64,000 bases of DNA, from positions 124,001 to 188,000 of the IMG/VR virus record IMGVR_UViG_3300028592_000004. One strand, given 5' to 3'. Both the position numbers and the translations under genes were made by a program. Under the pieces are notes generated by a model, which was given only the letters and a program-made list of their open reading frames with translations, made no database searches and was not told the DNA's origin. This document shows positions 8,920-61,605 of this stretch, one piece after another (positions within the stretch are counted from its first letter, which is position 1; every line of letters starts with the position of its first letter).

Positions 8920-9356
8920 GAGGACCCCGCCTGAATTGTGTCTTCGACGTACTTGAGGACGCCGCCTTCAAAGATCCCCTTCGCATTGGCGTGCCCACGA
9001 CGGGCTGAGGCCGCGTGAGCCAGGGCTCGGACCGGCGTCAGCCGGCTGGCGCGAAAGGCACGCTCGGCGTGGGCCACGTAGCCGTTCTGCTCGGCCAAGG
9101 CGATCTCGTCACCAACCGTTCCCGGAGAGGCATCATCCGCGATGACCTCTTCGTAGTTGGCGCCAATCTCGGAGCGATCGAAGGGAGTCGTGATGCTGCC
9201 CAGGTCCAGCGGGTTGCCTTCCCACTCGCCCGGGTTCTGCCAGACCCGCTGCTCCTGATTGCGCAAGGCTCCCGAGATCTTGCCGGCCTGTTCAACCAGG
9301 TCGGTGATCAGGTTCGAGAAGACCTCGGAAACGCGTGCAACGCTCTTCGCTTTCAT
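8916..9356 (-). CDS. Hypothetical protein
   Basis: 146-aa ORF with 4-nt overlaps to both neighbours. Confidence 0.6.
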   Translation of the reverse strand: MKAKSVARVSEVFSNLITDLVEQAGKISGALRNQEQRVWQNPGEWEGNPLDLGSITTPFDRSEIGANYEEVIADDASPGTVGDEIALAEQNGYVAHAERAFRASRLTPVRALAHAASARRGHANAKGIFEGGVLKYVEDTIQAGSS

Positions 9357-10102
9357 ACGACCCCCAATCCGTCCAGTTCATCGACCTGAGCCTGGATGCG
9401 AGCCATACGCTGGCTGATCGCACCCGGAGAAAGATTCAGCTTTCGCGCCAGCTGCTTGCCGGACATCTTCTGCTGACCGTTCAGTCCGACCGAGTGCTCG
9501 ACCAGAACCTGATCGACCGGATCCAGATCGTCGTAGATGAACTGGATCCGATGCAAGAACGCGTCCGGCCCCATCACGCCAGGCTCGAAGCCGAAGCCTT
9601 CGTCGTCTTGTCCGGATTCGGAGATCTGCCCTTCTGTCACAGCGGGCCGGGTTGAACGGACGTAGGCGATCCGCTTCGGAGAGAAGCCGGTAAAGTCGGC
9701 CAGCTCCGAAATGGACGGCGAGCGGGAAAGCTGATCGAACAGCTCGTTCTCCGCTGCCGCTAGGGCTGCACCCTCCTGGGCGACTCGCTCTGGAACGTGA
9801 ATCAGTTGATTCTGCTGCGCAGCGTAGCGCTGAAGCCCCTGTAGCGAGGCCATGAGGTGCGTCCGGAGCGAGCCCCGGCCTGGATCGTAGGAGTCGACAG
9901 CGTTGGCGGCGATCAGACGCGCCCGCCCTTTGAGCTGAGGGCTGTTTGCACCACCGCCAAAGGTCCGCATGCCTGTCTGGATGATCGGGTCGACGGCCTT
10001 GACCATCGCTGTCCGCCTGGACGGGGACTGGTTCAGCTTGTAGGCCCGATACGGCTCACGGAACTCATCCTCCAGGTTCCCAAAGTCGAAGTTGCTCATC
10101 AC
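9353..10102 (-). CDS. Sigma-70 family RNA polymerase sigma factor (alternative/group 3-like)
   Basis: Region 2 (AVDSYDPGRGSLRTH..IHVP), region 3 (LSRSPSISELA) and region 4 HTH (MSGKQLARKLNLSPGAISQR). Confidence 0.85.
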   Translation of the reverse strand: MMSNFDFGNLEDEFREPYRAYKLNQSPSRRTAMVKAVDPIIQTGMRTFGGGANSPQLKGRARLIAANAVDSYDPGRGSLRTHLMASLQGLQRYAAQQNQLIHVPERVAQEGAALAAAENELFDQLSRSPSISELADFTGFSPKRIAYVRSTRPAVTEGQISESGQDDEGFGFEPGVMGPDAFLHRIQFIYDDLDPVDQVLVEHSVGLNGQQKMSGKQLARKLNLSPGAISQRMARIQAQVDELDGLGVV

Positions 10103-41566: not shown

Positions 41567-43483
41567 TTAGAGCCCGTCCAAAACGGACGGGAGGGACTTC
41601 TTCGGTTTGAGAGGGTCGGCCTCCCAGCCCTGCGTCAGACCCTCTCGACCGAAGTTGAGGGGGTTCATCGCCATCGCCGAGGGGTAGCTCGTCCCAAAGG
41701 GATCGATCGTGTCGCCGCGGTGGACAGCCTTGAGCGTGCTCTTTTCTAGGTTCGAGCCGAGGTGCCGCGAGACAACGTCCTCGTCCTGTTCCAGGTTCGC
41801 CATTCCGCGGATCATCACCGGCGTGAACGGCGGCGGGTCGTCGTTGACGTCGATGTTCTGGATGCCAAACTCCTGCAGCTCCTTCACAACCGAGGGCCGG
41901 ATCTTCGTTCCAATCGTGTAGTGCAGGACCGGCTTCTCCAGGTACTTTCCCTTGGCACTGCCCGGGTGCATCCGGATCGTACTTGCCCGGGGTTGCCAGT
42001 TCCGTTCCAACTGCTGGTACGAGACGATGTCGTTCGGCACCCGGTCATCCAGTTCGTCGTCGAGCCGGACGTGGTTGATCAGCCCGCGTGCAAGAAGCTC
42101 GACGTTCCGGCGATGGGCGCCCATGCCCGCCTCCCGGTACGCCTGAGCAAAGGCCTTGGTGTAGTACCGCCGGCCCTCCCCGATCCCCTTGTGCTCAATG
42201 ATCTCAGCCGGGTTCGGGATCCCGTCGCTGAGGACGTCGCCAGCTTCGACTTCGTCACCCGGCTTGACCTTCACCTCGTGGCCGTGGCCGACGTAGTGGC
42301 GGTCATTGCCCACGGTGACGAAGAATCCACCCTGGGGCGCCGGGGTGACTTCGTTCACGCGGCCGTCGAGCTTCGAGATCGAAGCCCCGGACTTGAACGT
42401 CTTCGGGACCTGAACGAACTGGTCAATCAGCTTGAAGCCGGAGACAGCCTTGTCGGCACCGGCGACACCGCCGGAGTGCTTTGAGGAGAGCTGCCCCTGT
42501 GTCAGCTTTTCCGACAGGGCCTGGGCAGCGGCGAGTCCAACGAAGTCTCCCCGCCGCGGAAGGAATCCGCGTTCCCGGACGCCGACGTCGCGGCTCCAGA
42601 CGCCATCCCCGGGACCGCCGACAGTCGGCGATCGGACAAGGATTCGCTTGAAGCCCTGGTCCTGGATGTCGCGCAGCACCTTCGGCGTCAGGATCGTGTT
42701 CCGGTCGTAACCCGCGACCGGTGAGGCCAGGAAGGCGCCTTCGTTGTCGGCATCCTCTGTGTCGACCGGCAGCCCGCGGTTCCCGTGGTCGTAGTCGTCC
42801 GGATCGTCTGTCCCGACCGTCACCAGCCGGTGGTTGACCTGGTTGAGCTGCTTGGCAAGGTAGCCGGAGTCTTGCGTGGACCCCTTCGTATCGAGCACCC
42901 CTTTCCGGGCGCCGAACGTACCGGCGAAATACTCCACCGGCGACAGCCCTTCGGAGTACGACCGCAGCACAGGAATCGGAATCGGCCGGCCCTTGTGGTC
43001 GACGTACAGCAGGTCGGAGCCGCGGAGCGACTTCAGGTTCCCGGCGTTACCGCGGGCACCGGAGGCGATCTGCTGCCAGAAGGGATTGTTCTCCTCCCTG
43101 CTCTCGTCGAAGATCTTCTTCTCCATCGGCTCCCGGAAACCCATCGCCGCATCGACGATCTGTTGGGCTCGGTCGTCATCGTTCAGATCGCCCTTGGCAA
43201 GGATCTGATTGAGCTTGCCCTGAAGCTGTTGACGCATCTGCATCGCAGACGGCGAGACGAGCATGTCCTTCAGCCGGAAGGAGAAGCTGCCGGTGCTGGT
43301 CGCGGCGTCCCGTCCGATGTCGGAGAGACGCTTCGTGACCTCGCGGTACTGGTCGGGATACTTCTCCGCGAGTTCCTGGAAGACAGCGTTGAGGCCCTTC
43401 TTGTCGAAGACGGCGTTCCGACCGCGCATCCCTTCCGGCAGGGCTTGATCGATGAGTAGTCGGCCTAGCGTCGTCTTGAGCAT
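41567..43483 (-). CDS. Phage multisubunit RNA polymerase, beta' C-terminal chain
   Basis: TTLGR, SGARG, EGLSPVEYF...GARKG..DT...T.DSGYL (bridge helix), AAAQALSE..TQ..L..KH.GG (trigger loop). Confidence 0.93.
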   Translation of the reverse strand: MLKTTLGRLLIDQALPEGMRGRNAVFDKKGLNAVFQELAEKYPDQYREVTKRLSDIGRDAATSTGSFSFRLKDMLVSPSAMQMRQQLQGKLNQILAKGDLNDDDRAQQIVDAAMGFREPMEKKIFDESREENNPFWQQIASGARGNAGNLKSLRGSDLLYVDHKGRPIPIPVLRSYSEGLSPVEYFAGTFGARKGVLDTKGSTQDSGYLAKQLNQVNHRLVTVGTDDPDDYDHGNRGLPVDTEDADNEGAFLASPVAGYDRNTILTPKVLRDIQDQGFKRILVRSPTVGGPGDGVWSRDVGVRERGFLPRRGDFVGLAAAQALSEKLTQGQLSSKHSGGVAGADKAVSGFKLIDQFVQVPKTFKSGASISKLDGRVNEVTPAPQGGFFVTVGNDRHYVGHGHEVKVKPGDEVEAGDVLSDGIPNPAEIIEHKGIGEGRRYYTKAFAQAYREAGMGAHRRNVELLARGLINHVRLDDELDDRVPNDIVSYQQLERNWQPRASTIRMHPGSAKGKYLEKPVLHYTIGTKIRPSVVKELQEFGIQNIDVNDDPPPFTPVMIRGMANLEQDEDVVSRHLGSNLEKSTLKAVHRGDTIDPFGTSYPSAMAMNPLNFGREGLTQGWEADPLKPKKSLPSVLDGL

Positions 43484-44517: not shown

Positions 44518-47500
44518 TTACCGGGGATTGATAATCTCGACGTTGTCGTCCACGCCGATCTCGCCCCGGCGGTAGGCCTGTACTGCGTCTCTCACTGTAG
44601 CGAACGTCCTAGTCCGATTCGAGGTCGGCGAAGGCTTGGACGCCCGATAGAGGCCCCCAGCATACTCCTTCCCAGGCAGCTGGTGAGCGCGGAAGTTGGA
44701 GACCGCCAGCAAATTCCGGCTGGGCAGCATCTTCTCGTAGGCATCTGCGACAGCCTCGTCGCTCTGCGGAACATGGTACTGCATCGCGTCGCCGTCGAAG
44801 TCAGCGTTGAATCCGGTGACGATCGTCGGCGAGATGTGGATCGTGTCGTCCTGGATCAGTTTCGGCCGGAACGCCATCAGGTTGTACCGGTGAAGCGTCG
44901 GTGCCCGGTTGAGCACGACCGGCCGATCTTCCATCGTCCGGAGCAGCATCGTGCGGGCGCGATCGGACCGCGACGTGACAGCTCGGGCCGCGTCCATCCG
45001 ACTCATCCCGTTGCGAACCAGTCCGCGAACGATGTGCGGCTTGTAGACCTCCCACGCCTTATCTTCCGGGATCCCCACTTCGTCCATGTCGAGATCCGGG
45101 TCTGGAATGATTGTGCCGCGACCGACCGTGTCGACCACCGAGCCGATCAGCTTCTGCTGGACGAAGCCATACTTCGGCGAACCACCGAAGATCGTCTTCA
45201 GCAGTCCCTTTACCTTGCGTTCCTGGTTCTTCGGCTGAGTCGGATCCGCCAGACCCGTGAGGGCCTTGAACGAGTTGTAGACGGCCAGGCGCTCATCACC
45301 CAGGTCGTCGAACTTGCCGGCCGCATCCTTCAGGATTCCGTTCGAATCCATGATCTCCTTGTAGAGCGCGTTGGCGTCGGCCACCATCGGTAGCTTGGAG
45401 CCCTGCATGACAGACACCGGCCGGAACACCGGCGGAATGACCGGCACCTTCGTAAGCATCCAGTCCCGCGGGTGGATCCCGTGCTGCTCCGCGCTCTTGA
45501 GGTACTTCAGCTTCCGGATGGCCTCATCCCGCCGGGTCTTCTTGCCGGACGCGATATCCGCCCGAGCGTTCTCGATCATTCGCGGGAGGTTGATCGAGTC
45601 CAGGGCGTACTTGATGGCGCTCGGCCCGGTGCGGTCGTTCAGCTTCTCGCGGCCGGCGAGGATGTCGAGGAACTTGTTCTCGGTCAGGCCGAGGACGCGA
45701 CGGATCGGTTCCTCCATGACAGGCGACGGCATCGGCTCACTGAGCTTGATGAAGCTCCACCGGTTACCGCCGTGCCCGCCGGTCAACTCTGGATCGAACA
45801 GACCGCCCTTGACCGGGTTGAGCCCGCCCTTCCAGTCGACAGTGTCGGAATTGGTGATCTCGCGGTTGCCAGCGAACTCGTCGATGTCGGCGTCGCGGAG
45901 GGCCAGGGTGTTGAACCGTGTCCCGTTCCGCACCACGTTGATCCCGGAGCCGCGGAGCGTATCCACGAACTTCTTGTAGACCATCGGGACCTTCGGCATC
46001 GGCGGAGCGTGACCGCTCATGTACTGCGTCCAGTACTCCGGATGCTGCTGTCCGCGCACGACGGCAGCGTCACGCAGGAACTCCGTGGCTCCGTGGCTCA
46101 GGAGGGCGTTGGCATCCAGGAGACTCACCCGCTTGCTTCCGGTCTGACCACCCTTCGCCGGCAGCCCCTCGCTGGTGTAGCCGCCCATGCTCCGACCCTG
46201 GCCCTTCGACTCGGCCGTGTGGTGGAGCTTCATGAAGTAGCGGTTGCCGGTGAAGATCCCCGGGATCTTCCGGTTGTTCGAACTCGGGTCGATCAGGTCT
46301 TCGGTGTCGGACAGACCATTCTTCTGCAGCTCCTGCATAGCGTACTGCACAAGGTCCGGGATGTCCTTGAAGTCCTTGACGTTGTAGTGCTTGCCGGTCA
46401 TCGCGGCGATCTTGCCAAGCGTCGCCTCAACCACCTGGGCGGGGTTGGTGCGGGTGATGATCCCCAGCGGGTTGGCGAGCACTTCGTACGGCTTACCGTC
46501 TGCACCGACAGGCATCTGGCTGTCGGGGATGATCTTCGCGATGACGCCCTTGTCCCCGTAGCGGCCGGAGATCTTGTCGCCGGTCTGGGCCTGCATCACG
46601 CTCTTGACGGTGACCACGATCCCCTTGTCCGTCTTGGCGACGTCGACAACCTCTCCGGGAGAGTGGTGGTCCCAGGTCTCCGTCTGGTCAGAGAAGGACC
46701 GATCCCGGGCCTTGTGAAGTGAGTTCTTGGCCCGCTCCTTCTGCTTGGCGCCGAGGATGATCGGGTCATCCGGCTGCAGGATCGTTCCCGGCTTGACCAC
46801 GCCATCGTCATCGATCGAGTCCAGCACCTTCCGCGGGTACTTGCTCGGGAACATGCTGATGAAGTCCCGCTTCTTCGTCCGGATGTTGTCGTCCAGGTCC
46901 AGCCCGTGCTGGTACATGTGCTGACTGCTCAGCCGCTTGGCGAAGGACTCGCTGATGGCGAAGGCATCCTCAAAGTTGATCCCCTTCCAGGCGATGTAGG
47001 CCGTCCGGGCATTCCGGCCGAGGGCCACGACTCCGTTCTTGTCGGTGTAGTTCGAGTGGGCGAGGAGCTGTCCCTGACCAACGCGATCCCCGGGCTTCAC
47101 AACGGCGGTGTTGTGGAGGTAGGTCTTTCGGTTCGAGGGGTCGTGATTCCAGAGCTCGACGACTTCCTTCTTGCCGTCCGGCGTCTGAATCGTGATCTCG
47201 TCGTTGTCGACGTGGGTGACCGTCCCGTCGACCTTGCTGCGGGATGCCCCGAACATCTCGCCGTACCGGTTCTCAAAGCTGTCGTCGACGTCCTCCGGCA
47301 CGCCGGTGCGGACAAACGGAGCTTCCCCGTCGTCGAGCGAGAGGGCCTGCGTCAGCATTCGCTGGGCCATCGCCGCCCGCTGCCCCTTCATGGCCGACTT
47401 CATGGGGACCATCGTCACCATCGGAGAGAGTGTGCTCTCCATGTTCGGCACTTCGAAGTCAACCTTGTCGCGCGGCACGAACTTCATCTTGCCGCCGACG

Positions 47501-48978
47501 AGCGCCGGGACCTGGTCCTTGTAGGTCGCCATCGCGTTCGGGAAGGCGAGGACAGCCTTGGTGATCTCCTGCGGTGACTTGAAGACGGTCTGGCCGGTCC
47601 GCGCGTCCCGGAAGGGAGCGTACATACGGCCGTCCTTCCCCTTCTCCGCAGCGTAGGCGAAGCGGGAGTCGACACCGGCCTTGAGCGATTCAGGCGTGAC
47701 CAGGCTGTCGATGAAGCCGAACTGTCCAGGCTGGACGCTCCGCGCTTCGTCGGGCACCGAGTCGACGCTCGGGATCCCGCCCTCACCCAGCCGGCTGACG
47801 CGGTACATCTGCTCAATGAGCATCCCCGGGTTGATCTCTTCCCCGGGGTTCCCCAGACCGCTGTCGGTGATGGCGCTGAGCAGGCCGCTCGTCAGGATCC
47901 CGGACGGGATATGGTCCAGGTTCTTGCGGATGGTGCCCTTCCACAGCATCCGGCGGAGCATGTTCTTGTCTCGACCGAAACGCTCTGCGAGGAGATCTTC
48001 GGGGCCGAGGAGCGTCTGGAAGGCCGGGTTGTCGCGGTCGTCCGTCTCGTCTTCGCCCTTGTTGATCGCCAGCAGCTTGCGGGTGGCCGCGAGCCACGTC
48101 GGGGCGTCGACCTTGTCGAATGCCTCGCGAAGGGTCTCCTTGTTGACCTCCGGATCGAGCTTCATCTTCCGGAAGGCTTCAGCAACGGCCTGCCCGCGCA
48201 GTCCCTCGTCCGGTTCGTTGCCGCGGACCAGCCGCCGGTAGAGCTTGTCGACCGCGCCGCGATCGTTCTTCGCCATGTTGGCGGCAGCCAGCTCGGGTCC
48301 CCACGCTTCGTTCAGCTGGGACGGCGTGACACCCATTGCCCGCAGGACCGGCCACATGGGGATCTCACCTTGGGCGATCTTGAGTTTGAAGATCCCGGAC
48401 TCCGGATCCATCATCACCCGATGCGCGAGCCCCTGGCCGGGGAGCACGTTGATGTGGGACTCCAGCTCGCCGCTCTCCTTCTGGCGGGAGAACGCTCCGG
48501 ACATGAGGCGAAGCTGGTGGCCAAGCGAGTAGCGGTTCCCGCTGAGGATGAAGGCCCCGCGGTCCCCAAAGTAGGGGACGTTCGCGATTGTAGCCCGCCG
48601 TTCGGAGATCGGCTGCTGCGTGGCCAGGTCGACCAGGCGCCAGGTCCCTTTCAGCTTCCGGGACAGCGTCTTCCCGGTGAGGATGGCGTTCTTCTGGTCC
48701 TTCTTCGAGTACCGTTCCGGCCCCTCGTACGCCGGGTCGACCAGCTCCAGCCGGTGCGTCTTGCTCTCGACCGGCTGGAACTTCATCGCGGAGTTCAGCA
48801 CGTTGTCGAAGATCGACTGCCGGATGGCTGTGACGTCCCCGAAGCCTCGACGTCCGGTCGGCTGAGCGAGCGGCGGAGGAGACCAGGGAGCGGGCGCCGG
48901 AGGGGTGCCCATTTGTGAATCCAGCCCCTGCAGCAGAGGCGAGGGGCTGGGGAGAAGGCCGTCCATGAAGTCAGGCAT
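44518..48978 (-). CDS. Phage multisubunit RNA polymerase, beta + beta' N-terminal fusion (catalytic chain)
   Basis: beta motifs NFEDA, GDKISGRYGDKGVI, NPLG..TR.N..Q, YFMKLHH; beta' motifs GLFD, VPVIPP..RP, LNRAPTLHR, NADFDGD (44788-44808). Confidence 0.97.
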   Translation of the reverse strand: MPDFMDGLLPSPSPLLQGLDSQMGTPPAPAPWSPPPLAQPTGRRGFGDVTAIRQSIFDNVLNSAMKFQPVESKTHRLELVDPAYEGPERYSKKDQKNAILTGKTLSRKLKGTWRLVDLATQQPISERRATIANVPYFGDRGAFILSGNRYSLGHQLRLMSGAFSRQKESGELESHINVLPGQGLAHRVMMDPESGIFKLKIAQGEIPMWPVLRAMGVTPSQLNEAWGPELAAANMAKNDRGAVDKLYRRLVRGNEPDEGLRGQAVAEAFRKMKLDPEVNKETLREAFDKVDAPTWLAATRKLLAINKGEDETDDRDNPAFQTLLGPEDLLAERFGRDKNMLRRMLWKGTIRKNLDHIPSGILTSGLLSAITDSGLGNPGEEINPGMLIEQMYRVSRLGEGGIPSVDSVPDEARSVQPGQFGFIDSLVTPESLKAGVDSRFAYAAEKGKDGRMYAPFRDARTGQTVFKSPQEITKAVLAFPNAMATYKDQVPALVGGKMKFVPRDKVDFEVPNMESTLSPMVTMVPMKSAMKGQRAAMAQRMLTQALSLDDGEAPFVRTGVPEDVDDSFENRYGEMFGASRSKVDGTVTHVDNDEITIQTPDGKKEVVELWNHDPSNRKTYLHNTAVVKPGDRVGQGQLLAHSNYTDKNGVVALGRNARTAYIAWKGINFEDAFAISESFAKRLSSQHMYQHGLDLDDNIRTKKRDFISMFPSKYPRKVLDSIDDDGVVKPGTILQPDDPIILGAKQKERAKNSLHKARDRSFSDQTETWDHHSPGEVVDVAKTDKGIVVTVKSVMQAQTGDKISGRYGDKGVIAKIIPDSQMPVGADGKPYEVLANPLGIITRTNPAQVVEATLGKIAAMTGKHYNVKDFKDIPDLVQYAMQELQKNGLSDTEDLIDPSSNNRKIPGIFTGNRYFMKLHHTAESKGQGRSMGGYTSEGLPAKGGQTGSKRVSLLDANALLSHGATEFLRDAAVVRGQQHPEYWTQYMSGHAPPMPKVPMVYKKFVDTLRGSGINVVRNGTRFNTLALRDADIDEFAGNREITNSDTVDWKGGLNPVKGGLFDPELTGGHGGNRWSFIKLSEPMPSPVMEEPIRRVLGLTENKFLDILAGREKLNDRTGPSAIKYALDSINLPRMIENARADIASGKKTRRDEAIRKLKYLKSAEQHGIHPRDWMLTKVPVIPPVFRPVSVMQGSKLPMVADANALYKEIMDSNGILKDAAGKFDDLGDERLAVYNSFKALTGLADPTQPKNQERKVKGLLKTIFGGSPKYGFVQQKLIGSVVDTVGRGTIIPDPDLDMDEVGIPEDKAWEVYKPHIVRGLVRNGMSRMDAARAVTSRSDRARTMLLRTMEDRPVVLNRAPTLHRYNLMAFRPKLIQDDTIHISPTIVTGFNADFDGDAMQYHVPQSDEAVADAYEKMLPSRNLLAVSNFRAHQLPGKEYAGGLYRASKPSPTSNRTRTFATVRDAVQAYRRGEIGVDDNVEIINPR

Positions 48979-51232: not shown

Positions 51233-52135
51233 TTACCGAACGTGGAAGCGGCCTTTCCGGGACCGCTGATAAGTCGGAGGAGGGGAGTAACGTGGAGCCG
51301 CCTGGAGCTGGGGAGCCTGCGGCGGCAGTACGAACTGCGTCTGTTCGACCGGACGTGGCGCCGGCATCGGAGCCTTCTCAACCTGGGCGGGTGCAGTCTG
51401 CCCGTCCCGGATGATGACATCGGCAACTGCCCGTTCGGCCTGCCGTGTCCGGTGGCTCTTGTACTTCGCCATCGCCAGGAACTCGTTGAGCTTCGTGACC
51501 CGGGAGTACATGCCGTACTTCGGATTGGCGGGCGGCTCGCGACCGATGCAGATCCCGATCAGCGTGCCGGTCGGACTGAACAACCCGCCGCCGGACTCTC
51601 CGGACGTCGGGATGTGGTCGACGATAATCGCCGTGTCGTCCGTGACGATCTTGCCTTCGTTGTCCAGCCAGAGTGCCTTCCGGGCAAGCCATTCTTTCGG
51701 CTGGACGCCGAGCGGCGATCCAACCGCATGAACGACGTCACCGACACGGGGAACCCACTCCCGGTCGTCGACGTGGTCGACTGCTTTCAGACCGAGGTTG
51801 CCAGGCCCCGTGAGAAGCTGGGTGTCGTACTGGCTACTCTGCCCGATCACCGACATCTGTGCCTGGTTGGCGAAGTCCTTACCCCACTGGATGGTGTAGC
51901 GGGTGTCGTCCGAGGGGAGCTTCGCGGACTCGAAGTGAAAACAGGTCGAAACCAGGGTTCGCTCTGGGCTCGATTCGAGCACAGTTCCGGACCCGTAGTG
52001 CTCGTGATTCTGAGTGAGGTTCTGGTACTTCACTCGAACTGCAGCCTCGATCGGCTTGACGTCCGGAGCGATGTAGACCTGCCCACCGCAGACGGCCCCG
52101 AAGATCGACAGAATGATTGGCGCGATATGAAGCAT
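51233..52135 (-). CDS. Exported trypsin-like serine protease (S1/PA clan)
   Basis: Signal-like N-terminus MLHIAPIILSIFGAVCG; GSGT, TCFH (His), YD (Asp), GESGGGLF (Ser). Confidence 0.85.
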   Translation of the reverse strand: MLHIAPIILSIFGAVCGGQVYIAPDVKPIEAAVRVKYQNLTQNHEHYGSGTVLESSPERTLVSTCFHFESAKLPSDDTRYTIQWGKDFANQAQMSVIGQSSQYDTQLLTGPGNLGLKAVDHVDDREWVPRVGDVVHAVGSPLGVQPKEWLARKALWLDNEGKIVTDDTAIIVDHIPTSGESGGGLFSPTGTLIGICIGREPPANPKYGMYSRVTKLNEFLAMAKYKSHRTRQAERAVADVIIRDGQTAPAQVEKAPMPAPRPVEQTQFVLPPQAPQLQAAPRYSPPPTYQRSRKGRFHVR

Positions 52136-52139
52136 CGCA

Positions 52140-52153
52140 AGTCCTCCGTGACT
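52140..52153 (-). promoter_or_regulatory. CsrA/RsmA-type hairpin at RBS
   Basis: AGTC-ACGGAG-GACT. Confidence 0.6.
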
Positions 52154-52190
52154 GAGAAACATCCCTGTGGTCGCACTGTATCGACCGAGA

Positions 52191-53360
52191 TCAGTTGCCG
52201 ACAAGCGGGAACGTCGGTTCCAGCATCTTCGGCACGTTTGCCAAATGCACGCGGGCTTCGCGGCTGGTGACCGTGAAGCCGTCGATCGAAGTCGTGATGT
52301 TGATGAACTTCTTGACCGTGACCTTTGGCTTCGGGTCGAGGAAGCTCACCGAGAGCGTGTCGCCCTGCCGCCGAACGGAGATCCGGACCTCGGCATTCGA
52401 CGTGGCCGTGATCCCATCAGACAGCTGGATCGTCTGACCGCCCAGCAGGCTGAGCATCGTGCCGACGAAGTCCTTCTTGTTCATCGGGACCGGGTTGCCG
52501 GCCCGCGGCACGGGCTTGTTGTTGGCCTTCGCCAGACTGACGGCCACAGCCTCCCAGACCCGGGCGTCTTCGGGAGGTGGCTCGGCCGTTGGAGGTGGCC
52601 CGGACATCGCTGCCGGCGGCGCCACCTTCCAACGGTTCTTGTTCAGCTCGTCGACCATCGCGACCCGCGACTTCCATTCGGTCTTGAACGCGTCCTTGGC
52701 GATCGCGCCAATGACCGGCTCGCCGATCTGGGCTACCTGACCGTCCCGGAGCCGATACCAGAACGTGAACCGCGGCAGCCGGAAGTCGGGCTCGGAGGAA
52801 CCGTGATCGACTATTCGGATGTGGGCGGTGCCGTCCATTTGCTTTCCGGTCGTGTAGACCGGCGCAAGCGACGGGGCCGTCTGGGTGATCCAGCTCTTGC
52901 AGAAGCCACACCAGTCCGCCGTGTCGATTTCGGCCCAGAACTCAAGTCCACTGGGAGCGTGGAGGCTTTCGATCTTGATTGCTTCTTCGGGGGCGTACTG
53001 GGGGACTCGCCGGTCTTCTTCGAACGTTCCTTGGATCGGAGGGTCTTCAACCGCAGCTTGCGGAGGCGGCGGAGGCTGGACCGCTGGACCTGCTTGCACG
53101 GCGGGACCAGGTCCCACCGAATGATTCGGCACTTGAGGGTAGCCAGCTGCTCCAGCGCGGCCAGTATCTGCTGTCGTTTGTGCGGCGTCATTGACCACCT
53201 CCCGAACGTCGACGAATTCCCCGTCCGTACGGGCCAGAGCGAAACGCGCTCGGGCCAGCGAGAGATCGGCGTAGGAGGGAGCCCAATTCGACTTGTAGGA
53301 CAGGTCCAAGCCTGTGCACCCGCAGAACGCGAGGAGCACGAGCAACAGAAACTGGATCAT
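52191..53360 (-). CDS. Lipoprotein with thioredoxin-like CxxC domain
   Basis: MIQFLLLVLLAFCG-C lipobox; TADWCGFCK; cis-Pro-like LPRF; Pro-rich linkers. Confidence 0.7.
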   Translation of the reverse strand: MIQFLLLVLLAFCGCTGLDLSYKSNWAPSYADLSLARARFALARTDGEFVDVREVVNDAAQTTADTGRAGAAGYPQVPNHSVGPGPAVQAGPAVQPPPPPQAAVEDPPIQGTFEEDRRVPQYAPEEAIKIESLHAPSGLEFWAEIDTADWCGFCKSWITQTAPSLAPVYTTGKQMDGTAHIRIVDHGSSEPDFRLPRFTFWYRLRDGQVAQIGEPVIGAIAKDAFKTEWKSRVAMVDELNKNRWKVAPPAAMSGPPPTAEPPPEDARVWEAVAVSLAKANNKPVPRAGNPVPMNKKDFVGTMLSLLGGQTIQLSDGITATSNAEVRISVRRQGDTLSVSFLDPKPKVTVKKFINITTSIDGFTVTSREARVHLANVPKMLEPTFPLVGN

Positions 53361-54343
53361 GCGGCGAGACTCCATTTGAGGTGCTGCAGGGTGAAGCCCT
53401 TCGCGCCAGCACCGGTGTACGAATCGTTCTGCTTGAGCATGCGATCGACGGTCGCAAAGTCGACCGCGAAGCATCCTTCAGGCAGCTCCACTTCCTCTCC
53501 GCTTTCGCAGAAGATCTTGTTCGGGCCGATCGGCTGATTGCCCCAAGACTGCTGACAGACGAAAGCAGGCCGGTTTCCGCGGGCCAGGAAGTAACCCCGG
53601 AAGTACATGCAGTGATTCCACGTCCCGTTCGCATAGTCGAAGCCGTCGCGGTCCCGGAAGTTCCGGAAGCCGACGTTCGAGCAGACGGGGATACCACGCC
53701 AGTTGCAGATCGAGGCTCGCGCCTCCTCGGCTGAGCGAACCGGCGCGATGTAGGTGATCGGATGCTGCCGGGACTCTGTTTCCAGCTCCGCCGGAACACC
53801 GTTACGGCTCGTGCCCCAGGTCTGAGCGATGTTGTCGTCCGGCGTCCGCAGGTCGTACTGACCGTACTTCAGGCGGAAGACGACGCCCCACTGTCGGACC
53901 CACTCCGCCATCCAGGCCCCGTAGGAGCCCTGGTTCCCGCCGAGCCGGCCTTTCCCGATCTCGATCCGAGAGCCGGCGTAGAGCGGTTCGGTGGCCACAG
54001 GGGCAACCCAGCGCTCCAGGGAGCCGAACATGATCTGGATCAGGAACAGGTCCTGAGCGAAGCGGCCCCAGCCCTGCGAAACGCAGGTCCCCAGGGTCTG
54101 CTTGAAGGCCCGGAGCATTCGCCCCAGGACCTTCAGCTCAGCTCGCCACAGGAAGGTGTCCGGAAACGAAGCCGCCGCCATCATGGCGGGTGCAGCCTCG
54201 CGGAGGGACGGGAACCAGTTTGTGGCAGCGGCAGCAGTACGCCTGACCTCGCTCTGGTTGTTGATCCAGCCGAGGTTATCCGCCGTAAAGCCACGTGGGA
54301 GGGCGCGTGTTTGCTCACGCTTACCTCGACTACGAGCAGACAT
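53357..54343 (-). CDS. Papain-like (C1) cysteine peptidase
   Basis: Q..GTCVS (Cys), NHCM (His), QQSWG (canonical NSWG); no signal peptide. Confidence 0.8.
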   Translation of the reverse strand: MSARSRGKREQTRALPRGFTADNLGWINNQSEVRRTAAAATNWFPSLREAAPAMMAAASFPDTFLWRAELKVLGRMLRAFKQTLGTCVSQGWGRFAQDLFLIQIMFGSLERWVAPVATEPLYAGSRIEIGKGRLGGNQGSYGAWMAEWVRQWGVVFRLKYGQYDLRTPDDNIAQTWGTSRNGVPAELETESRQHPITYIAPVRSAEEARASICNWRGIPVCSNVGFRNFRDRDGFDYANGTWNHCMYFRGYFLARGNRPAFVCQQSWGNQPIGPNKIFCESGEEVELPEGCFAVDFATVDRMLKQNDSYTGAGAKGFTLQHLKWSLAA

Positions 54344-54356
54344 CCATGTCCTCCCG

Positions 54357-54833
54357 TTAGCCGGCAACGGCCTGACAGGCCGCAGCAAGCTGACGCAGTT
54401 TGAGAACGAACGCAGCCCGGCCGGCGTCATCCAAATCGCCAACAGGGAGCGTACGGAGCCAGGCGTCGACGACGACTGGCAATTTGACGATCAGACCCGT
54501 CTTCAGTCCGATCCGTTCGCGGGCAGTGGCCAGCGCGGAGAGCGCGGCGGCACCGGTCTGGATCGACTTATCCAGTTCGACCGCATCGGCCGCTGCCGTG
54601 TACAGCGAGCAATAGTCGCGGGCCTTAATCTGGTAGTCGGTGAATCCGCTGGTCTGGAAGGCATCGGCGACCTGGGCGTTGAGCGTCGGGTCCGCCGGCA
54701 CAGCCGGATTGACGGGGTTCACCGGGTTGACCGGGTTGACGGGGTTCGGAACAGGCTGCGGACCGGGGACCGGCGGGGCACACCCCACCAGCATCCCGAG
54801 GAGCAGCGCACTACCGAGCAGCTTTCGCGACAT
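54357..54833 (-). CDS. Lipoprotein with Pro-rich (NPV)n linker
   Basis: LLLGMLVG-C lipobox; PNPVNPVNPVNPVNP 9-nt tandem repeat near 54705-54750. Confidence 0.75.
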   Translation of the reverse strand: MSRKLLGSALLLGMLVGCAPPVPGPQPVPNPVNPVNPVNPVNPAVPADPTLNAQVADAFQTSGFTDYQIKARDYCSLYTAAADAVELDKSIQTGAAALSALATARERIGLKTGLIVKLPVVVDAWLRTLPVGDLDDAGRAAFVLKLRQLAAACQAVAG

Positions 54834-55825: not shown

Positions 55826-56824
55826 TCAGCTACTTCTGATCCTCCCGTTGGACCCGATCCGGAGGTTGTCGATGTTGAATTCGCCGTCCGCGAGGACTTC
55901 CACGAAGGCGAAGCCGTGGTTCCACTTATTGATCCGCGCGTACTCCGGGTAGAGCTCGCACAGGCAGCCTGTCGACCAGGTCGCAACCTCTTGGTGCTTC
56001 CAGTTTGGCTCGGAGTGCTGACTCGACCGGTGGCCGTGACCAACCAGGACCGTGTCGTTCATCCGGAGGAACGCTCCGCGGGCCATGTTGACGGGGTTCG
56101 TCAGACCCTTCGGCAGTTCGTGCCCGTGGAAGATCGGCAGGTTGCCGGCCATGATCGGCCGCTGGTCGCCGACGATCTCGATACCGTGCTTGTCCGCGTG
56201 CAGCCAGGTTTCCAGGTCCAGCAGCGGATCATCCGCTACCTCGGCGAAGTAGTTCCAGATGTAGTGGTCCCACCGCTCGTCATGGTTCCCCTTCTTCAGG
56301 ATGATCCGCGCCTTCGGGAACTCGCTGCGGAGCCACGCCAGCCCCTGACGCTGGCAGGCGATCTCTTCCTTCAGGTTCCGATCCTTGGGGTTCTTCTGGA
56401 AGCGGGAGACCGAGTACCAGTCGCCATAGTCTCCGTTGATCAGGAGGATGTCTGGCTTCCGGTCTTTGCAGTACTTCACCGCGGCGCCGAGCGCCATCTC
56501 CGAGTGGAAGGGAAAGTGGATGTCCGACAGGACGGCCAACTGGATCCCAGTCGGGAGCACGACCGGCTCCCAGGCTTCAGCCTTGCTCGGCGGCATGGTC
56601 GGCTTCGTGCCGGCCTTTCCGTTCGGCCGTGGACTCGTTGCCTCGTCACGATGCTCCTTGCCCTTGTTGCCGCGGATGGTGCGAACGTAGTCACGGCCCT
56701 GTTCGATTGAGATGCCGTACTCCTTTGCGAGGCGCCTGGCGAGCGTTCGCGAGGCTGCATCGGGATACTCTCTACACAGCTGCTCTGCAGCCAGTCGGAT
56801 TGGCCCTTTCGGTGGTTTGCTCAT
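55826..56824 (-). CDS. Calcineurin-like metallophosphoesterase with N-terminal HTH-like segment
   Basis: SDIH, GDYGD, GNHD, HGH, GHGH motifs. Confidence 0.9.
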   Translation of the reverse strand: MSKPPKGPIRLAAEQLCREYPDAASRTLARRLAKEYGISIEQGRDYVRTIRGNKGKEHRDEATSPRPNGKAGTKPTMPPSKAEAWEPVVLPTGIQLAVLSDIHFPFHSEMALGAAVKYCKDRKPDILLINGDYGDWYSVSRFQKNPKDRNLKEEIACQRQGLAWLRSEFPKARIILKKGNHDERWDHYIWNYFAEVADDPLLDLETWLHADKHGIEIVGDQRPIMAGNLPIFHGHELPKGLTNPVNMARGAFLRMNDTVLVGHGHRSSQHSEPNWKHQEVATWSTGCLCELYPEYARINKWNHGFAFVEVLADGEFNIDNLRIGSNGRIRSS

Positions 56825-57135
56825 TCGGAATCCCTCCTGTATCCGAGTCGGTACAAAATACGGGCCAGGTCGGTCGCCACAGTGGCGCACCATTCCTCCG
56901 ACCTGTGCCAGTCTGCGGCGTGCAGGACCTCATGGATGATGACGTCCAGCTCTCGCTCGCCCGAGATGGCGGTCGAGATCACGATCTCACGCTTCTTGAG
57001 ATCGGAAGAAGAGAATGGGTGCTGGGTCTTGGCCTCACCCGTCGTGAACCCATCGAGATTACGGAGATACTTGCGGACGAACCGCCAGCGCTTCCCAAAA
57101 ATGATGACCTGCTTCAGCACTCGTCCACAATCCAT
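56821..57135 (-). CDS. Small HExxH (minimal zincin-like) protein
   Basis: IIHEVLHA...SEE; ATGA coupling to the phosphoesterase. Confidence 0.65.
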   Translation of the reverse strand: MDCGRVLKQVIIFGKRWRFVRKYLRNLDGFTTGEAKTQHPFSSSDLKKREIVISTAISGERELDVIIHEVLHAADWHRSEEWCATVATDLARILYRLGYRRDSE

Positions 57136-57157
57136 GTGTTGGAGGCAGTCGGATCGG

Positions 57158-59512
57158 TCAGTCGAAGGCGGCGCTGATGGCACCGGTCAACAACCCGCCC
57201 CAGAGGCCCGCTTGCTGCAGGCCCACCTGGGCCTCGGGATTGAGGCCCGCTAGGGCTCCCATTGTTTTACCCAGAAGCAACCCACCGAGAAATCCCCCAG
57301 CCCCGCTGAAGGCAACGGTCTTGGCGATGTCGAAAGGCGAAACGGAGGGCTTTCCACCGCTCCCCAGCGAGGCGGCGACGAGCGTACCGCTCGCGGCTGC
57401 AGCGACTTGCGCTGGCGTGCCACCGAAGTTCGAGCCGGGCCGTGCGGCGTCATTCCAGATCACACTCCCGAAGGCGTCGACGGGGATATTCGACAGGAAC
57501 ATTGTCCCCGTCATGTCCTCCGCGGCGTTGGTTTTCGTCCGACCGGACCAGCCGAAGTCGTCGGCCGGCATCTCGGAACCCATCCCAGACAGGTTCGAGT
57601 TCCACCCGTGCGGCGTCTTGAGACCCCAGTACAAACCCGGAGCAGCGCCCAGGCCGGCGCCCAGGAGCCCCAGCGTGCGTCGCATCCGCTTGCCGGAGAA
57701 GTACTGCTCCGGAAGCATGTTGTCCATCAGATAGCCGGCACCGTAGCCCAGGCCGGCTCCCAGAGCTCCACCAACCAGCGTGCTGGAGAGCGGGCTCGGC
57801 CCACCGAGCGGCTTGTTGACCTTCGACCACATGTCCGAAATCCCCTCGAACATCGCGCCCTGCTTGAACATCGTCCAGCCCGGCTCGTCGGCCGGGATCG
57901 TACTGACCAGGCCCTTCTCCGGATGGACGAACCAGCAGCCCTCTGCCTCCGCATACTTCACGACCAGCGGCGCCGCCTGCTCGTACAGAGCTCGCACCCG
58001 GGCGGGGACTTCCCGCCAACTGAGGTGTTCCAGCTCGTCGATCGCGCTCGCTTCCTTCTGGTTGCGCTGTCCGATCTCCTTCAACAGATCCCGGAACTTC
58101 ATGTTGATCTCTTCCTTCTGCTCGGCCAGACGCCGCAGGTGATAGTCCGCTCCAGACCGATCATCGGTCAGGCCGAGGAACCGTTCCAGAGAGGATGGCT
58201 CCCGAGGGCGGGACAGGAAGTTCTGGATGAGGACGTTCCGCTGGTCTGTCGGAAGGTAGCCGTGACTATCGTGACGGATCCCGCGGCCTTTGACCTGAGT
58301 ATCGCGAGCCTCGTTCCAGTGCGGATCCAGGATCTGCATCAGCCGAGTGCCACGGAGCGAGATCCCTTCCGAGCCGGCGGGACCGGCGAGCAGCACCGGA
58401 GCCAACCCGTTGTTGTAGCTCTCAATAATCCGCTTCCGCTCCAGGTCGGCGATACCGCCGTGGAAGAGGCCGTAGGGGATCTTGTCTCGCTCCAGGGCCG
58501 CGGCGTAGGGACGGAGGCCGGCGTCAATGAAGTTCGAGTAGACGAGCGCTCGGCTCTTCGGGTTCTTCGCCATCTGCTCCTTGAGGAGCTTATAGGCCAG
58601 CTGCAGCTTGGGCGAGGAATCGAACGCGGCCAACGGGTCCGGGTTCGACATGAACGGGAACATCGACAGCCCGATCTGTCGCGGTCCGGTCAGGAAGGAC
58701 GTCATCCGCTTCCGTTCGAGGGCGGAGAGCGGGAAGTTGTTCTGCAGCTTGTAGCGCAGGACCCAGGGGATCGAGTTCCAGAACGACCGATACGCGGTCG
58801 TCTGCTCGTCCGACATGTCAACTTCGTGCATCTCGTCTGTGCGATCCACGAGCGGCTTATCGGGAGCGTGGTAGTCGACGTGGCCCGCCAGCAGATCTTC
58901 CAGCCGGCCGACGTTCTTCGGCTCCATCACCTGGCCGGGCGTGACACCGAACAACGAGGCGAAGAAACCCGGGCGAACCGTCTTCTGCTTGATGAACTGG
59001 TGTGTGAACGCGTCCGGCGTGATCCGCTCGCCGGTCAGGATCGACATCGGCGCCGCGAGATCGGACGGGTGATTGACGATCGGCGAGCCCGAGAGGAGGT
59101 AAACGTGCTTGGCCTTGTTCGCCAGGTCCGTCACTGCCTGCGTCCGCTGAGACTCAGGGTTCCGGATCCGGTGAGCCTCATCGACGATCAGAGTGTCCGC
59201 GGCCGGGGCCTTGCCCGCCGTCGCGCCCTCGTAGGACACAACGTTGCCCATCAGCGAGCCGTCAGTGAACTTGGCCTGCTCCTTCGCAAAGTTGGGACGC
59301 AGTGCCGCTGGCACGATAGCCGTGTACGGCTTGCCGGCGTTCTCTGCCGCAGCGATCGAGGCCAGAGTCTTCCCGCTCCCCACGTCGTGGAAGAGGAGCA
59401 TGCGGGACTCTTCGTCCTTCCCGGTCTGGGCGATCCGCTTCTGTTGAGGCTGCAGCTCGACGCCCGGCAGGAGGGCCGCGATCTTCAACTGGTCAACGAA
59501 GTCGGCGTCCAT
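57158..59512 (-). CDS. SF2 (SNF2-like) helicase/translocase fused to a C-terminal glycine-zipper region
   Basis: GSGKT, DEAH, SGSP, EGISL, Q..GRGIR; C-terminal GGALGAGLGYGAG and similar segments. Confidence 0.85.
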   Translation of the reverse strand: MDADFVDQLKIAALLPGVELQPQQKRIAQTGKDEESRMLLFHDVGSGKTLASIAAAENAGKPYTAIVPAALRPNFAKEQAKFTDGSLMGNVVSYEGATAGKAPAADTLIVDEAHRIRNPESQRTQAVTDLANKAKHVYLLSGSPIVNHPSDLAAPMSILTGERITPDAFTHQFIKQKTVRPGFFASLFGVTPGQVMEPKNVGRLEDLLAGHVDYHAPDKPLVDRTDEMHEVDMSDEQTTAYRSFWNSIPWVLRYKLQNNFPLSALERKRMTSFLTGPRQIGLSMFPFMSNPDPLAAFDSSPKLQLAYKLLKEQMAKNPKSRALVYSNFIDAGLRPYAAALERDKIPYGLFHGGIADLERKRIIESYNNGLAPVLLAGPAGSEGISLRGTRLMQILDPHWNEARDTQVKGRGIRHDSHGYLPTDQRNVLIQNFLSRPREPSSLERFLGLTDDRSGADYHLRRLAEQKEEINMKFRDLLKEIGQRNQKEASAIDELEHLSWREVPARVRALYEQAAPLVVKYAEAEGCWFVHPEKGLVSTIPADEPGWTMFKQGAMFEGISDMWSKVNKPLGGPSPLSSTLVGGALGAGLGYGAGYLMDNMLPEQYFSGKRMRRTLGLLGAGLGAAPGLYWGLKTPHGWNSNLSGMGSEMPADDFGWSGRTKTNAAEDMTGTMFLSNIPVDAFGSVIWNDAARPGSNFGGTPAQVAAAASGTLVAASLGSGGKPSVSPFDIAKTVAFSGAGGFLGGLLLGKTMGALAGLNPEAQVGLQQAGLWGGLLTGAISAAFD

Positions 59513-60189
59513 GCCAGCACCCTCTCCAGCTCCATCAGAGGCTTGGCCGAGGACGTTTTCTCCGCGGCCCAAATGCAACTCGGACAGTCGTGGTCGACGA
59601 CGTGCCGCTCATTGTGGGAGCAGCGACACCGGGTCTCGTGCCCGCACTTATGTTGAAAGATCCCGTGCGCTGACGCTGCCTTCGCGACGTCGCTGTTCTC
59701 CTGCAGGATCTTCTTCTTCCGGACCGCGCAGGTGATGTGGAAATCGTACTCGTTGTTCTTGGGGCGTGCTGACAGCCCGTATGACTTGCGAAGTTTCTCC
59801 AGATCCGGAGACTTCACTTTCAGGAACCAGACCCGCGACATTTCCTTCCAGCTCGTTGGCGCGACCTCTTGCAGCGCCCCAAGCTGGTAGTGGAACTCCC
59901 TTCCCCGCTCGACGATGACGTCGATGCCGCCAATCTGCTCGATCTCTTCCGGACGCATGACGCTGATATGCGCATTCAGCGGTTCATTGTTGTGTGGCCC
60001 GGGCAATTCTGCGCCAAGGACCCGCATCGCCGAGAAGACACCCCTGACTAGATCATTCGGGACTGTCAGCAACAGCCATCCACTCTGAGACGCAATCAGC
60101 CGGCCCGCCAAAACGGGGGCATCGACCGCGTCACCCGCGGACTTCAAGAGGTAGCCGGACGCTTCGCCTAGTTGAAAGTCTGACGTCAC
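59485..60189 (-). CDS. 2H phosphoesterase family protein with C-terminal Cys/His cluster
   Basis: Two HxS/T motifs (AHISV, FHITC) about 80 aa apart; GTG start after GAGGA. Confidence 0.75.
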   Translation of the reverse strand: MTSDFQLGEASGYLLKSAGDAVDAPVLAGRLIASQSGWLLLTVPNDLVRGVFSAMRVLGAELPGPHNNEPLNAHISVMRPEEIEQIGGIDVIVERGREFHYQLGALQEVAPTSWKEMSRVWFLKVKSPDLEKLRKSYGLSARPKNNEYDFHITCAVRKKKILQENSDVAKAASAHGIFQHKCGHETRCRCSHNERHVVDHDCPSCIWAAEKTSSAKPLMELERVLAWTPTSLTS

Positions 60190-60430
60190 GGACCTTTCCT
60201 CGTAGAAGTCCAGGTCACGTCTCCCCGGATCCCCTCCCGGGGTCCTGACGGAAAATGAATTTCCGCCTCGCAACGGCATCGCAGGCACATCCGTTGCTCC
60301 TCCATAGTCTCCGCAGTTTCCCATGAGACCGTTCCTGGGAGCCCTCGCAATCCTCGCGTGAAGCTCCCTCCTAACCGGGCAGTGCCATGCCCAGACGTGA
60401 CGCGTCTCACCTTAACCGAAATCCGTACTG
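60190..60430 (-). ncRNA. Candidate structured GGA-rich RNA (CsrB/RsmZ-like sponge or structured leader)
   Basis: Largest intergenic gap; eight consecutive hairpins; 17 GGA triplets by manual count. Confidence 0.55.
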
Positions 60431-60434: not shown

Positions 60435-60809
60435 CTACTCATCTTCATTGAGATTGGGGACTTCCAGGAAAACACGGCTGACGGATTCAAATGTGATCCG
60501 GATCCAGGTTGGGGTCAGATCTTCGAGGACTTGTGTTCGGTGTTCGACCAACCTGTACACGCAGCGCTCAACTGCGTTGTACAGGTTGTCCTCGGACCGA
60601 ATTGCCTGCAGTCGGTTGACAACTGGGCTCAAACGTCGCATCAATCCCAGAAAGATCTTCTGCAGACGCCTGCCTTCGAGGTCCGACTCGATGGCAAGGC
60701 GGGACAGAGGCTCTCCGCGCTCAACGCATTCCATCACCGCCGCGGTGATGGACATTGCCAACGTTTGCCAGATCAGCCATTCCTGGGTGATCGGCAGCTT
60801 CCTAGCCAT
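60435..60809 (-). CDS. Hypothetical protein
   Basis: Start MARKLP overlaps the caspase stop; 124 aa. Confidence 0.5.
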   Translation of the reverse strand: MARKLPITQEWLIWQTLAMSITAAVMECVERGEPLSRLAIESDLEGRRLQKIFLGLMRRLSPVVNRLQAIRSEDNLYNAVERCVYRLVEHRTQVLEDLTPTWIRITFESVSRVFLEVPNLNEDE

Positions 60810-61605
60810 TGGAGAAGACTTCCCACAGCTGTGCGTACTTCGGTCCCGAGAGGACCGGAGTCTGCGGGCACTCATCACTCGGCAGGTGATTTCGGACGAG
60901 ACGGAACAGATCCCGGTAGGTCGCCTGCGGAGGCAGCTTCGGGATCAGCTGCTGCAGGTAGTACGAGAAGGCACCCTTCGGGCGCCCGTCGAACTCCGTG
61001 TCGAAGGCGAACTCCTTGTCGCTGCAAGCGGACATGCAGACGACCCCCTGCGTCATCCACGCCAGGGGCATGTGCTCTTGCTTGAGGGCGGTATCGATCG
61101 ACTTCTGCAGCCCCTTGAACTGCGGCAGATCGTACGGAGGCAGGAAGCGTTTCTTCACCCGCTTGCCGGGCTTCTTCTTCGGAGCGGACCGCATGACCGT
61201 TCCGGAGTGGCAGCTGTCGGCGATCAGAGCTACCCGAGCTTCCGGCTTGCGGTTCTGGTCGAACAGGAGGTACAGCTCATCGTCCAGAATCAGCTCGTTG
61301 TCGAGGTCGTAGGGGCACCAGGCTTCGTCTCGACCGTCGATCTCATCGCCATCCAAGTCGGGCACCCAGGTCCCGTGGCCGGCGAAGGTGATGATGGCCA
61401 ACTCGTTCGGCCCGGTGGCCTGCAGGAGTTCCGTCAGACCCTTCAGGATGTTGGCGCGGGTGGCCTCCTTTTCGAGCAGAACGTTCTGAACCTGGACACC
61501 TCGCTCGACAAGCAGGGTGGCCCAGTCCTGAGCGTCGTTGACAGCCCCGTAGAGCTCCATCTCCGAGTTGGCGTAGTTGATGCCGATGCACAGTGCACGC
61601 TTCAT
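60802..61605 (-). CDS. Metacaspase / caspase-family (C14) peptidase
   Basis: KRALCIGINY, L.G.VND, FAGHG (His), DSCHSG (Cys), GAFS, QTP. Confidence 0.92.
   Translation of the reverse strand: MKRALCIGINYANSEMELYGAVNDAQDWATLLVERGVQVQNVLLEKEATRANILKGLTELLQATGPNELAIITFAGHGTWVPDLDGDEIDGRDEAWCPYDLDNELILDDELYLLFDQNRKPEARVALIADSCHSGTVMRSAPKKKPGKRVKKRFLPPYDLPQFKGLQKSIDTALKQEHMPLAWMTQGVVCMSACSDKEFAFDTEFDGRPKGAFSYYLQQLIPKLPPQATYRDLFRLVRNHLPSDECPQTPVLSGPKYAQLWEVFSNG

Follow-up and report, generated by a model that had tools for sequence, protein, structure and literature searches.

What does a bacteriophage gain by carrying a SNF2 motor and an unrelated glycine-rich module on a single polypeptide? The question is raised by a gene at positions 57158..59512, on the minus strand, of a 64,000-nt stretch of viral DNA (positions 124,001 to 188,000 of IMG/VR record IMGVR_UViG_3300028592_000004), which we refer to as the window. 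The source record is 229,210 bp in length with a G+C content of 63%, and the long open reading frames (ORFs) that we took as genes in the window all lie on the minus strand. The gene encodes 784 amino acids (aa) and a stop in one frame, with a SNF2-type ATPase of superfamily 2 (SF2) at the N-terminus and a glycine-zipper region, hereafter the C-module, at the C-terminus. Here, we show that it is a lineage-specific in-frame fusion of two adjoining genes in an uncultured soil jumbo phage. We further show that the C-module is the constant element across a phage clade; the enzymes attached to it or adjoining it are interchangeable, and the SNF2 ATPase is one accessory option among them. The original prediction for this gene had described a packaged polyprotein, cut at K-x-A tripeptides into a DNA translocase and a membrane component. 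What it observed is partly confirmed by our analysis, and its interpretation is partly supported.

An in-frame fusion of two genes

The ATPase core occupies aa 1-482 (58067..59512, minus strand) and closes with the terminal helix of its family. Pfam SNF2-rel_dom (49.2 bits, cut-off 24.9) and Helicase_C (52.7 bits, cut-off 23.5) both matched inside residues 1-420, and the helicase half matched PHROG 62 'DNA helicase' at 1.3e-44. Motifs I, II, III and VI of the catalytic core are complete (GSGKT at 45-49, DEAH at 111-114, SGSP at 141-144 and QVKGRGIR, of the form QxxGRGxR, at 406-413), and their columns are invariant in an alignment of 56 sequences (alignment A3). With both lobes above the Pfam gathering scores and the motifs complete, this half is a SNF2/SWI2-type SF2 ATPase, as the original prediction had held. 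Judging from its family, it should be a translocase or remodeler of double-stranded DNA and not a strand-separating helicase. The helicase half has more than 370 homologs at approximately 50% identity, mostly on contigs of 100-230 kb. The majority are stand-alone proteins of 480-500 aa, whose ends fall just past the helix that closes at residue ~482, where BLASTP placed the end of the homology. Extra N- or C-terminal parts are found in 52 of the top 120 homologs (2H-SAK, SET, InPase, LigD_N, ligase and inteins, by Pfam).

The C-terminal 302 aa differ in composition from the ATPase: they are 19% glycine and contain 15 GxxxG motifs, compared to 4 in the 482-aa helicase. Sequence reading and alignment place a fusion linker, RNQKEASAIDEL, at aa 483-494 (58031..58066, minus strand), followed by the C-module at aa ~495-784. 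At 58040-58057 (minus strand), the linker contains AAGGAAG, 8 nt upstream of the ATC codon of I491, and I491 aligns with the start methionine of stand-alone C-module proteins, which begin 8-20 residues ahead of a conserved W-x-x-V-P. AAGGAAG and ATC may be what is left of a ribosome-binding site and its start codon, or alternatively a weak internal initiation site.

Two Logan contigs from two other soil samples, X3 (4016 nt, covering 56800-58243) and X4 (582 nt, covering 57885-58466), both span the junction at 58031-58066 without an indel or stop. As these independent contigs cross the junction intact, we reject an assembly artifact at this site. Two likely source runs, X1 and X2, yielded no contigs, possibly a false negative. 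The halves are moreover joined in frame, and therefore no indel error could have produced the fusion. Within the ORF, X3 carries 14 variants spread across both halves, every one of them third-position synonymous, and X4 carries two synonymous variants and E522Q, so that 16 of the 17 variants are synonymous. Both halves are thus under purifying selection in separate samples.

Translation of the 784-aa ORF starts at an ATG at 59512-59510 (minus strand), preceded 8 nt upstream by a Shine-Dalgarno-like GGAGAGGG (59520..59527, minus strand, read from the sequence). An ESM Atlas entry is identical to the protein with this ATG start, and a look-up of sequencing runs found the sequence in soil metagenomes of several studies. 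Near-identical DNA is absent among GenBank phages, and no paralog of either the helicase or the C-module is found elsewhere in the 229-kb genome.

The C-module is the constant element among relatives

Searched alone in a word search, the C-module was covered over its full span by 56 proteins at 28-49% identity, typically 300-350 aa long and without a Pfam domain. A profile search of 1.84 billion representatives returned 979 family members, of which 578 scored E 1e-30 or better. Nearly all members are proteins of 300-450 aa that carry the module at their C-terminal end. No Pfam family matched the C-module, in the 784-aa protein or in members of the family; the Pfam Gly-zipper family gave a weak match in one of 57 C-module family members and none for the 784-aa protein.

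Using a 20-row C-module alignment, we searched for related loci and compared 42 that carry the module, some of them near-duplicates. A β-β′N RNA polymerase (RNAP) gene lies 3-9 kb downstream of the C-module in 38 of the 42, and a 2H-SAK domain is found upstream of it, likewise in 38 of 42. What precedes the C-module is a variable enzyme array, drawn from 2H-SAK, NUDIX, SET, InPase, LigD_N and sometimes SNF2. The upstream protein differs between loci, being 2H-SAK+NUDIX+DUF5661 in L014, for example.

A SNF2 helicase stands immediately 5′ of the C-module in three of the 42 loci, in addition to the present genome, and in each of the three the two parts are separate adjacent genes. In L005, a 912-aa helicase with an N-terminal 2H-SAK domain (5266-8004) is followed by a C-module gene (8001-8948). 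In L006, which comes from a 229,147-bp contig, a 1095-aa helicase (2H-SAK, SNF2, SET, InPase) precedes a 402-aa C-module gene (E 1e-79). In L015, a 1874-aa protein at 4173-9797 (plus strand) combines a LigD 3′-phosphoesterase domain (LigD_N) with a SNF2 domain interrupted by an intein-like segment, and the C-module gene is directly next to it. The original prediction had named such separation in relatives beforehand as a check of its two-unit build, and this part of it holds.

The C-module is also fused to other enzymes. It forms the C-terminus of a 1310-aa SET+InPase+NUDIX protein (P0263) and of a 724-aa 2H-SAK+SET protein (P0238), and it is joined to 2H-SAK only in P0285, P0205 and P0213; the neighborhoods of these longer fusions resemble those of the other loci. 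A second fusion of SNF2 to the module was not found: a region-restricted word search returned only two non-helicase proteins, and the longer profile matches scanned among the 150 listed carry other partners. Relatives carry these parts joined in some cases and apart, or split again, in others, so a covalent link between them is optional. It follows that proteolytic separation of the two parts is possible, though neither required nor indicated.

Predicted fold of the C-module

The ~200 aa of glycine-zipper helices described originally do contain glycine-rich helices, but the module is larger, at ~300 aa, and begins with an α/β subdomain. An AlphaFold2 model built with the family alignment is confident, with a predicted local distance difference test (pLDDT) score of 82 and a predicted template modeling (pTM) score of 0.72. 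The model lays out four parts in succession. The N-terminal α/β subdomain (aa 495-570, 57803..58030, minus strand) has two helices and three short strands, with a conserved W-x-x-V-P and [ILV]-K-x-[AG] (alignments A1 and A2). A long glycine-zipper helical hairpin follows (aa 571-633, 57614..57802, minus strand; helices at 92-117 and 127-150 of the model), in which invariant glycine columns flank a basic connecting loop, GKRMRR. A disordered, low-confidence loop (aa 634-677, 57482..57613, minus strand; pLDDT < 60) varies in length across the alignment. The compact C-terminal helical subdomain (aa 678-784, 57161..57481, minus strand) is the best-conserved part, with the consensus IPVDAFN..W.D ... 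GK.LGALAGL.P.AQ..LQ..G.WGG; modeled alone, it reached pLDDT 89.5 and pTM 0.81. In the C-module alignments, the columns that never vary are glycines.

No convincing structural relative of the whole module emerged. Foldseek searches with it against the PDB and BFVD had no match reaching E 0.001, and a wide structure search reached a Z-score of at most 6.2, for the hairpin only, with a weak likeness to membrane helical hairpins. In the ESM Atlas, the structure search stayed below a template modeling (TM) score of 0.35, with glycine-zipper lipoproteins weakly resembled, and the feature search gave no usable match. For the C-terminal subdomain alone, no similar fold was retrieved (Z at most 5.6; Foldseek E > 2), and a PDB sequence profile search with the C-module yielded nothing meaningful.

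No sign of proteolytic processing

We then asked how far these data agree with a packaged polyprotein from which cuts at K-x-A release a short leader, a DNA translocase and a membrane component, with the translocase, free or membrane-anchored, drawing the viral DNA into the cell. Such a model is consistent with the two-part build and with the fact that relatives encode the parts separately. It also fits the structural and RNAP genes around the fusion gene and the presence in virions of a homolog from Salmonella phage Arash (see below). Peptidase genes are also near: a caspase-like gene at 60802-61605, a weak trypsin-like gene at 51233-52204 and, in relatives, a Peptidase_M10 gene near the C-module.

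The proposed cleavage code itself, however, does not behave as a signal. The tripeptides KIA (10-12), KEA (486-488), KYA (519-521) and KQG (550-552) are present where they had been placed. K-x-A occurs three times against 4.2 expected from shuffled sequences, and K-x-[AG] four times against 8.3, which makes K-x-A rarer than chance. The 12-aa leader said to end in KIA is likewise contradicted by the alignment: position 10 is K, and position 12 is A, S or G, in 52 of 52 helicase family members. Many homologs start M-x-K or M-x-x-K. As K10-x-A12 is invariant and lies 2-3 residues from the methionine in many homologs, it is the first conserved element of the fold and not the end of a leader. KEA, at the boundary, lies inside the lineage-specific fusion linker and is not conserved; nor is KYA. 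The lysine of KQG (K550) is at least 90% conserved and sits at a strand or turn inside the N-terminal subdomain of the C-module. We know of no phage maturation protease that uses K-x-A; maturation cleavage follows L/I-x-E in T4 and S/A/G-x-E in phiKZ. With peptidase genes close by, cleavage is possible, but we see no sign that the protein is cut.

The import function proposed with this model fares no better. Five relatives that are complete or nearly complete carry both the C-module and the RNAP, and only one of them has the helicase, 15 kb distant. A helicase missing from four of these five is not the genome-import motor of the clade, and a core role in pulling the genome in is unlikely for the motor described here. 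Taken together, we regard the cut-polyprotein model as very improbable.

Gene neighborhood and RNA polymerase

The fusion gene lies within a co-directional run that holds virion structural genes and the phage RNAP genes. Its order is methyltransferase, glycosyltransferase-like, caspase-like, 2H-SAK, the fusion gene, metallophosphoesterase, RNAP large, RNAP small, homologs of Arash structural proteins, major capsid, sheath, baseplate and fiber. A tail-fiber protein with collagen-like repeats is encoded at 93-1967 (minus strand) and matches many PHROG tail-fiber families.

The next gene upstream encodes a 279-aa 2H-SAK phosphoesterase (59485..60324, minus strand; Pfam PF22547, E 2.2e-11) and overlaps the helicase start by 28 nt. 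By tblastn it matches loci L002, L004, L005, L006 and L009: in the helicases of L005 and L006 its homolog is the N-terminal domain, and in other loci the homolog is a free-standing 2H-SAK gene ahead of the C-module. A programmed −1 frameshift joining it to the helicase was considered and rejected, as the overlap lacks a slippery heptamer. Two genes upstream of the helicase is the caspase-like protease (60802-61605, minus strand; Pfam Peptidase_C14, E 1.3e-24), for which tblastn against six related loci returned no match.

Directly after the fusion gene, we find a calcineurin-like metallophosphoesterase (55826-56893, minus strand; PHROG 221, 2.5e-31; Pfam Metallophos), which adds a further phosphoester enzyme to this block. 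At 52191-54442 (minus strand), several candidate ORFs without a family match overlap by ~100 nt or more (for example, 53357-54442 with 52191-53474, and 54357-54833 with 53357-54442). Between the fusion gene and the RNAP there is also a weak trypsin-like signature (51233-52204, minus strand; Pfam Trypsin_2 at 1.1e-4, below the cut-off; PHROG 9683 'protease' at 8.4e-5). The corresponding block of relatives L002 and L049 contains a Peptidase_M10 gene.

The RNAP is of the multisubunit type but is encoded by only two genes, present as a single set in the 229-kb genome. The large gene (44518..48978, minus strand; 1486 aa; Pfam Rpb2_6, Rpb1_1 and Rpb1_2) fuses β to the N-terminal part of β′ and lies 8 kb downstream of the fusion gene. 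The second (41567..43483, minus strand; 638 aa; Pfam Rpb1_5) encodes the C-terminal part of β′ and is homologous to Arash Gp216. RNAP identity is ~32% to Arash Gp206 and to Vibrio phages D181, D148 and D69, and ~50% to metagenomic relatives.

This arrangement invites the hypothesis that the fusion protein is an RNAP accessory remodeler, a functional analog of RapA/HepA or vaccinia NPH-I, acting in recycling, termination or the clearing of DNA-bound host proteins, with the C-module tethering it to the polymerase or template. Besides the position of the gene ahead of the RNAP genes, with which it shares a strand, the hypothesis draws on Arash, in which the helicase homolog adjoins the RNAP β′ gene and equals the polymerase in virion abundance. 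A review by the group of Iyer et al. mentions RNAP-linked SNF2 helicases in jumbo phages and suggests a RapA-like role (PMC7824862). The nearest solved sequences, all weak matches, are CSB/ERCC6, Rad26, Sulfolobus SNF2, Rad54, ISWI and the vaccinia proteins NPH-I and VETF-s; CSB, Rad26, NPH-I and VETF-s are coupled to RNAP. NPH-I and VETF-s are packaged with RNAP in vaccinia. However, the same RNAP is accompanied by the helicase in only the one relative noted above, and the helicase family is also present in hundreds of phages, such as PB1-like Pseudomonas phages, which to our knowledge carry no RNAP. A Pfam scan of the 784-aa protein found no RapA-specific domain, and the protein begins 10 residues ahead of the conserved core. 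Finally, the other fusion partners of the C-module are nucleotide and phosphoester enzymes and not transcription factors. We consider a role as RNAP remodeler possible but unlikely.

Probable virion association and candidate function

The nearest homolog of the helicase in a cultured phage is Arash Gp217, with 33.5% identity across the whole ATPase. Arash particles yielded 38 unique peptides and 1148 spectra for Gp217, compared to 1210 spectra for the RNAP protein Gp216 and 877 for the portal (PMC10585845). In addition, the relatives of both the helicase and the C-module carry the domain sets of injected 'polyvalent proteins', and those with SNF2, 2H and InPase domains have been argued to be packaged and injected (Iyer et al. 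2017, PMC5512222).

These observations also bear on the opposite view, in which the protein is a non-virion helicase for replication, recombination or repair, made in the cell, and the fusion is a tolerated accident without shared function. A recombination role has been suggested for the SNF2 helicases of jumbo phages, and the fusion is found in one lineage only, both of which fit such a view. Against it, we recognized no replication genes among the ORFs that we scanned across the 64-kb window, where structural and RNAP genes are located; the Arash homolog is abundant in particles; the C-module has joined three or more other enzyme sets in independent fusions; and selection has preserved both halves in separate samples. 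We think this explanation quite unlikely, somewhat more so than the RNAP remodeler.

On balance, we lean toward a polyvalent-protein-type fusion in which an accessory SNF2 motor is joined to a conserved glycine-zipper C-module, the protein probably being made late, packaged and injected, and the C-module serving as a shared packaging, delivery or anchoring element. The enzyme array and the C-module would be made late and packed into the head alongside the virion RNAP, and would enter the host together with the DNA. Once inside, the array enzymes could target the incoming DNA, nucleotide signals or transcription. The C-module would provide the shared packaging, delivery or anchoring, possibly by oligomerizing or by inserting peripherally into the membrane via its glycine zippers.

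Several points weigh against this polyvalent-type reading. The particle data come from Arash, a phage without the C-module (a profile search of its whole genome did not detect one). The Arash particle preparation listed 116 proteins, ribonucleotide reductases included (PMC10585845); contamination is therefore possible, and the detection of Gp217 is suggestive and not proof. By tblastn, no C-module homolog was found in 50,697 deposited phage records. The conserved gene order inside one clade may stem from descent and not from function. A complex prediction of the helicase core with the C-module scored 0.00, which is evidence neither way. Further, the C-module helices are less hydrophobic than classical transmembrane helices, and the basic hairpin loop poorly suits a simple two-pass topology behind a cytoplasmic ATPase.

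The last two points also concern the membrane component of the original prediction. The most hydrophobic 19-mers of the C-module reach 1.0-1.45 on the Kyte-Doolittle scale, with a crude Hessa sum of about +4.3 to +6.7 kcal/mol, placing the helices below transmembrane thresholds, and the fusion protein has no lipobox or signal peptide. Given this modest hydrophobicity and the basic loop, a membrane role for the C-module is something that we infer, and peripheral or oligomeric insertion suits it better than two classical spans after a 480-aa cytoplasmic domain.

A bolder form of the polyvalent-type reading takes the C-module as a widespread family of injected delivery or anchoring proteins (~1000 clusters at 50% identity) in RNAP-carrying soil jumbo phages. 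Such a family would carry interchangeable counter-defense enzymes (2H-SAK, NUDIX, SET, InPase and SNF2) and engage the host membrane at the entry site through its glycine zippers, and here it would keep a DNA translocase attached to the genome as it enters. It may be likened in spirit to the injected phiKZ proteins that assemble a lipid-associated early infection compartment (bioRxiv 10.1101/2024.03.24.586471). We hold this form to be improbable, about on a par with the RNAP remodeler.

The helicase half is ordinary, and the value of the locus lies in its partner. The C-module represents a large unannotated family, fixed upstream of the RNAP in a clade of uncultured soil jumbo phages and repeatedly joined to polyvalent-type effector enzymes, and the present fusion is a Rosetta-stone case that links a SNF2 motor to the C-module system. 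If the C-module is a shared packaging or delivery element, it would offer a handle to find injected effectors in metagenomic phages, and it would be a candidate, open to testing, for the way in which jumbo phages arriving with an RNAP of their own organize the first minutes of infection.

Comparison with known systems

The archetype of the polyvalent proteins is the P1 DarB methylase-SNF2 protein (Iyer et al. 2017, PMC5512222). As in that group, a SNF2-clade ATPase and an unrelated module share one polypeptide here, and the delivery-with-DNA logic proposed for polyvalent proteins could apply; relatives bear 2H-SAK, InPase, NUDIX, SET and LigD_N, with two to five domains in shuffled orders, beside head genes. 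The fusion protein joins two unrelated modules, with domain shuffling among its relatives, and in this respect it is polyvalent. Unlike typical members, it consists of just two modules and lacks a methylase, MuF/portal, ART or MPTase domain. Hallmark domains of polyvalent proteins (MuF/portal-linked, MPTase and LPDs) had no Pfam match in the 784-aa protein or the C-module family, and the constant partner is a glycine-zipper module that matches no Pfam polyvalent-protein-associated domain.

Arash shares the two-gene RNAP as well as portal and capsid homologs with the present phage. Its Gp217, in contrast to the fusion protein, is a stand-alone protein of 472 aa encoded directly after the β′ gene, in a genome with no detectable C-module.

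With RapA/HepA, vaccinia NPH-I and VETF-s, and the RNAP-linked SNF2 proteins of the phiKZ group (PMC7824862), the fusion protein has in common a SNF2 core and a genomic or physical coupling to multisubunit RNAP. It differs from these RNAP-associated ATPases in its weak similarity to them (E 1e-5 to 1e-8), in lacking the RapA N-terminal domains and in that most relatives sharing its RNAP can do without the helicase.

Lastly, the C-module resembles SlyB/Pcp-type glycine-zipper lipoproteins and Tim17/Romo1 in its repeated G-x-x-x-G in paired helices, with a weak structural likeness at aa 571-633. Compared to those membrane hairpins, its helices are less hydrophobic, and the hairpin is set in a larger, 300-aa fold of its own without a structural relative.

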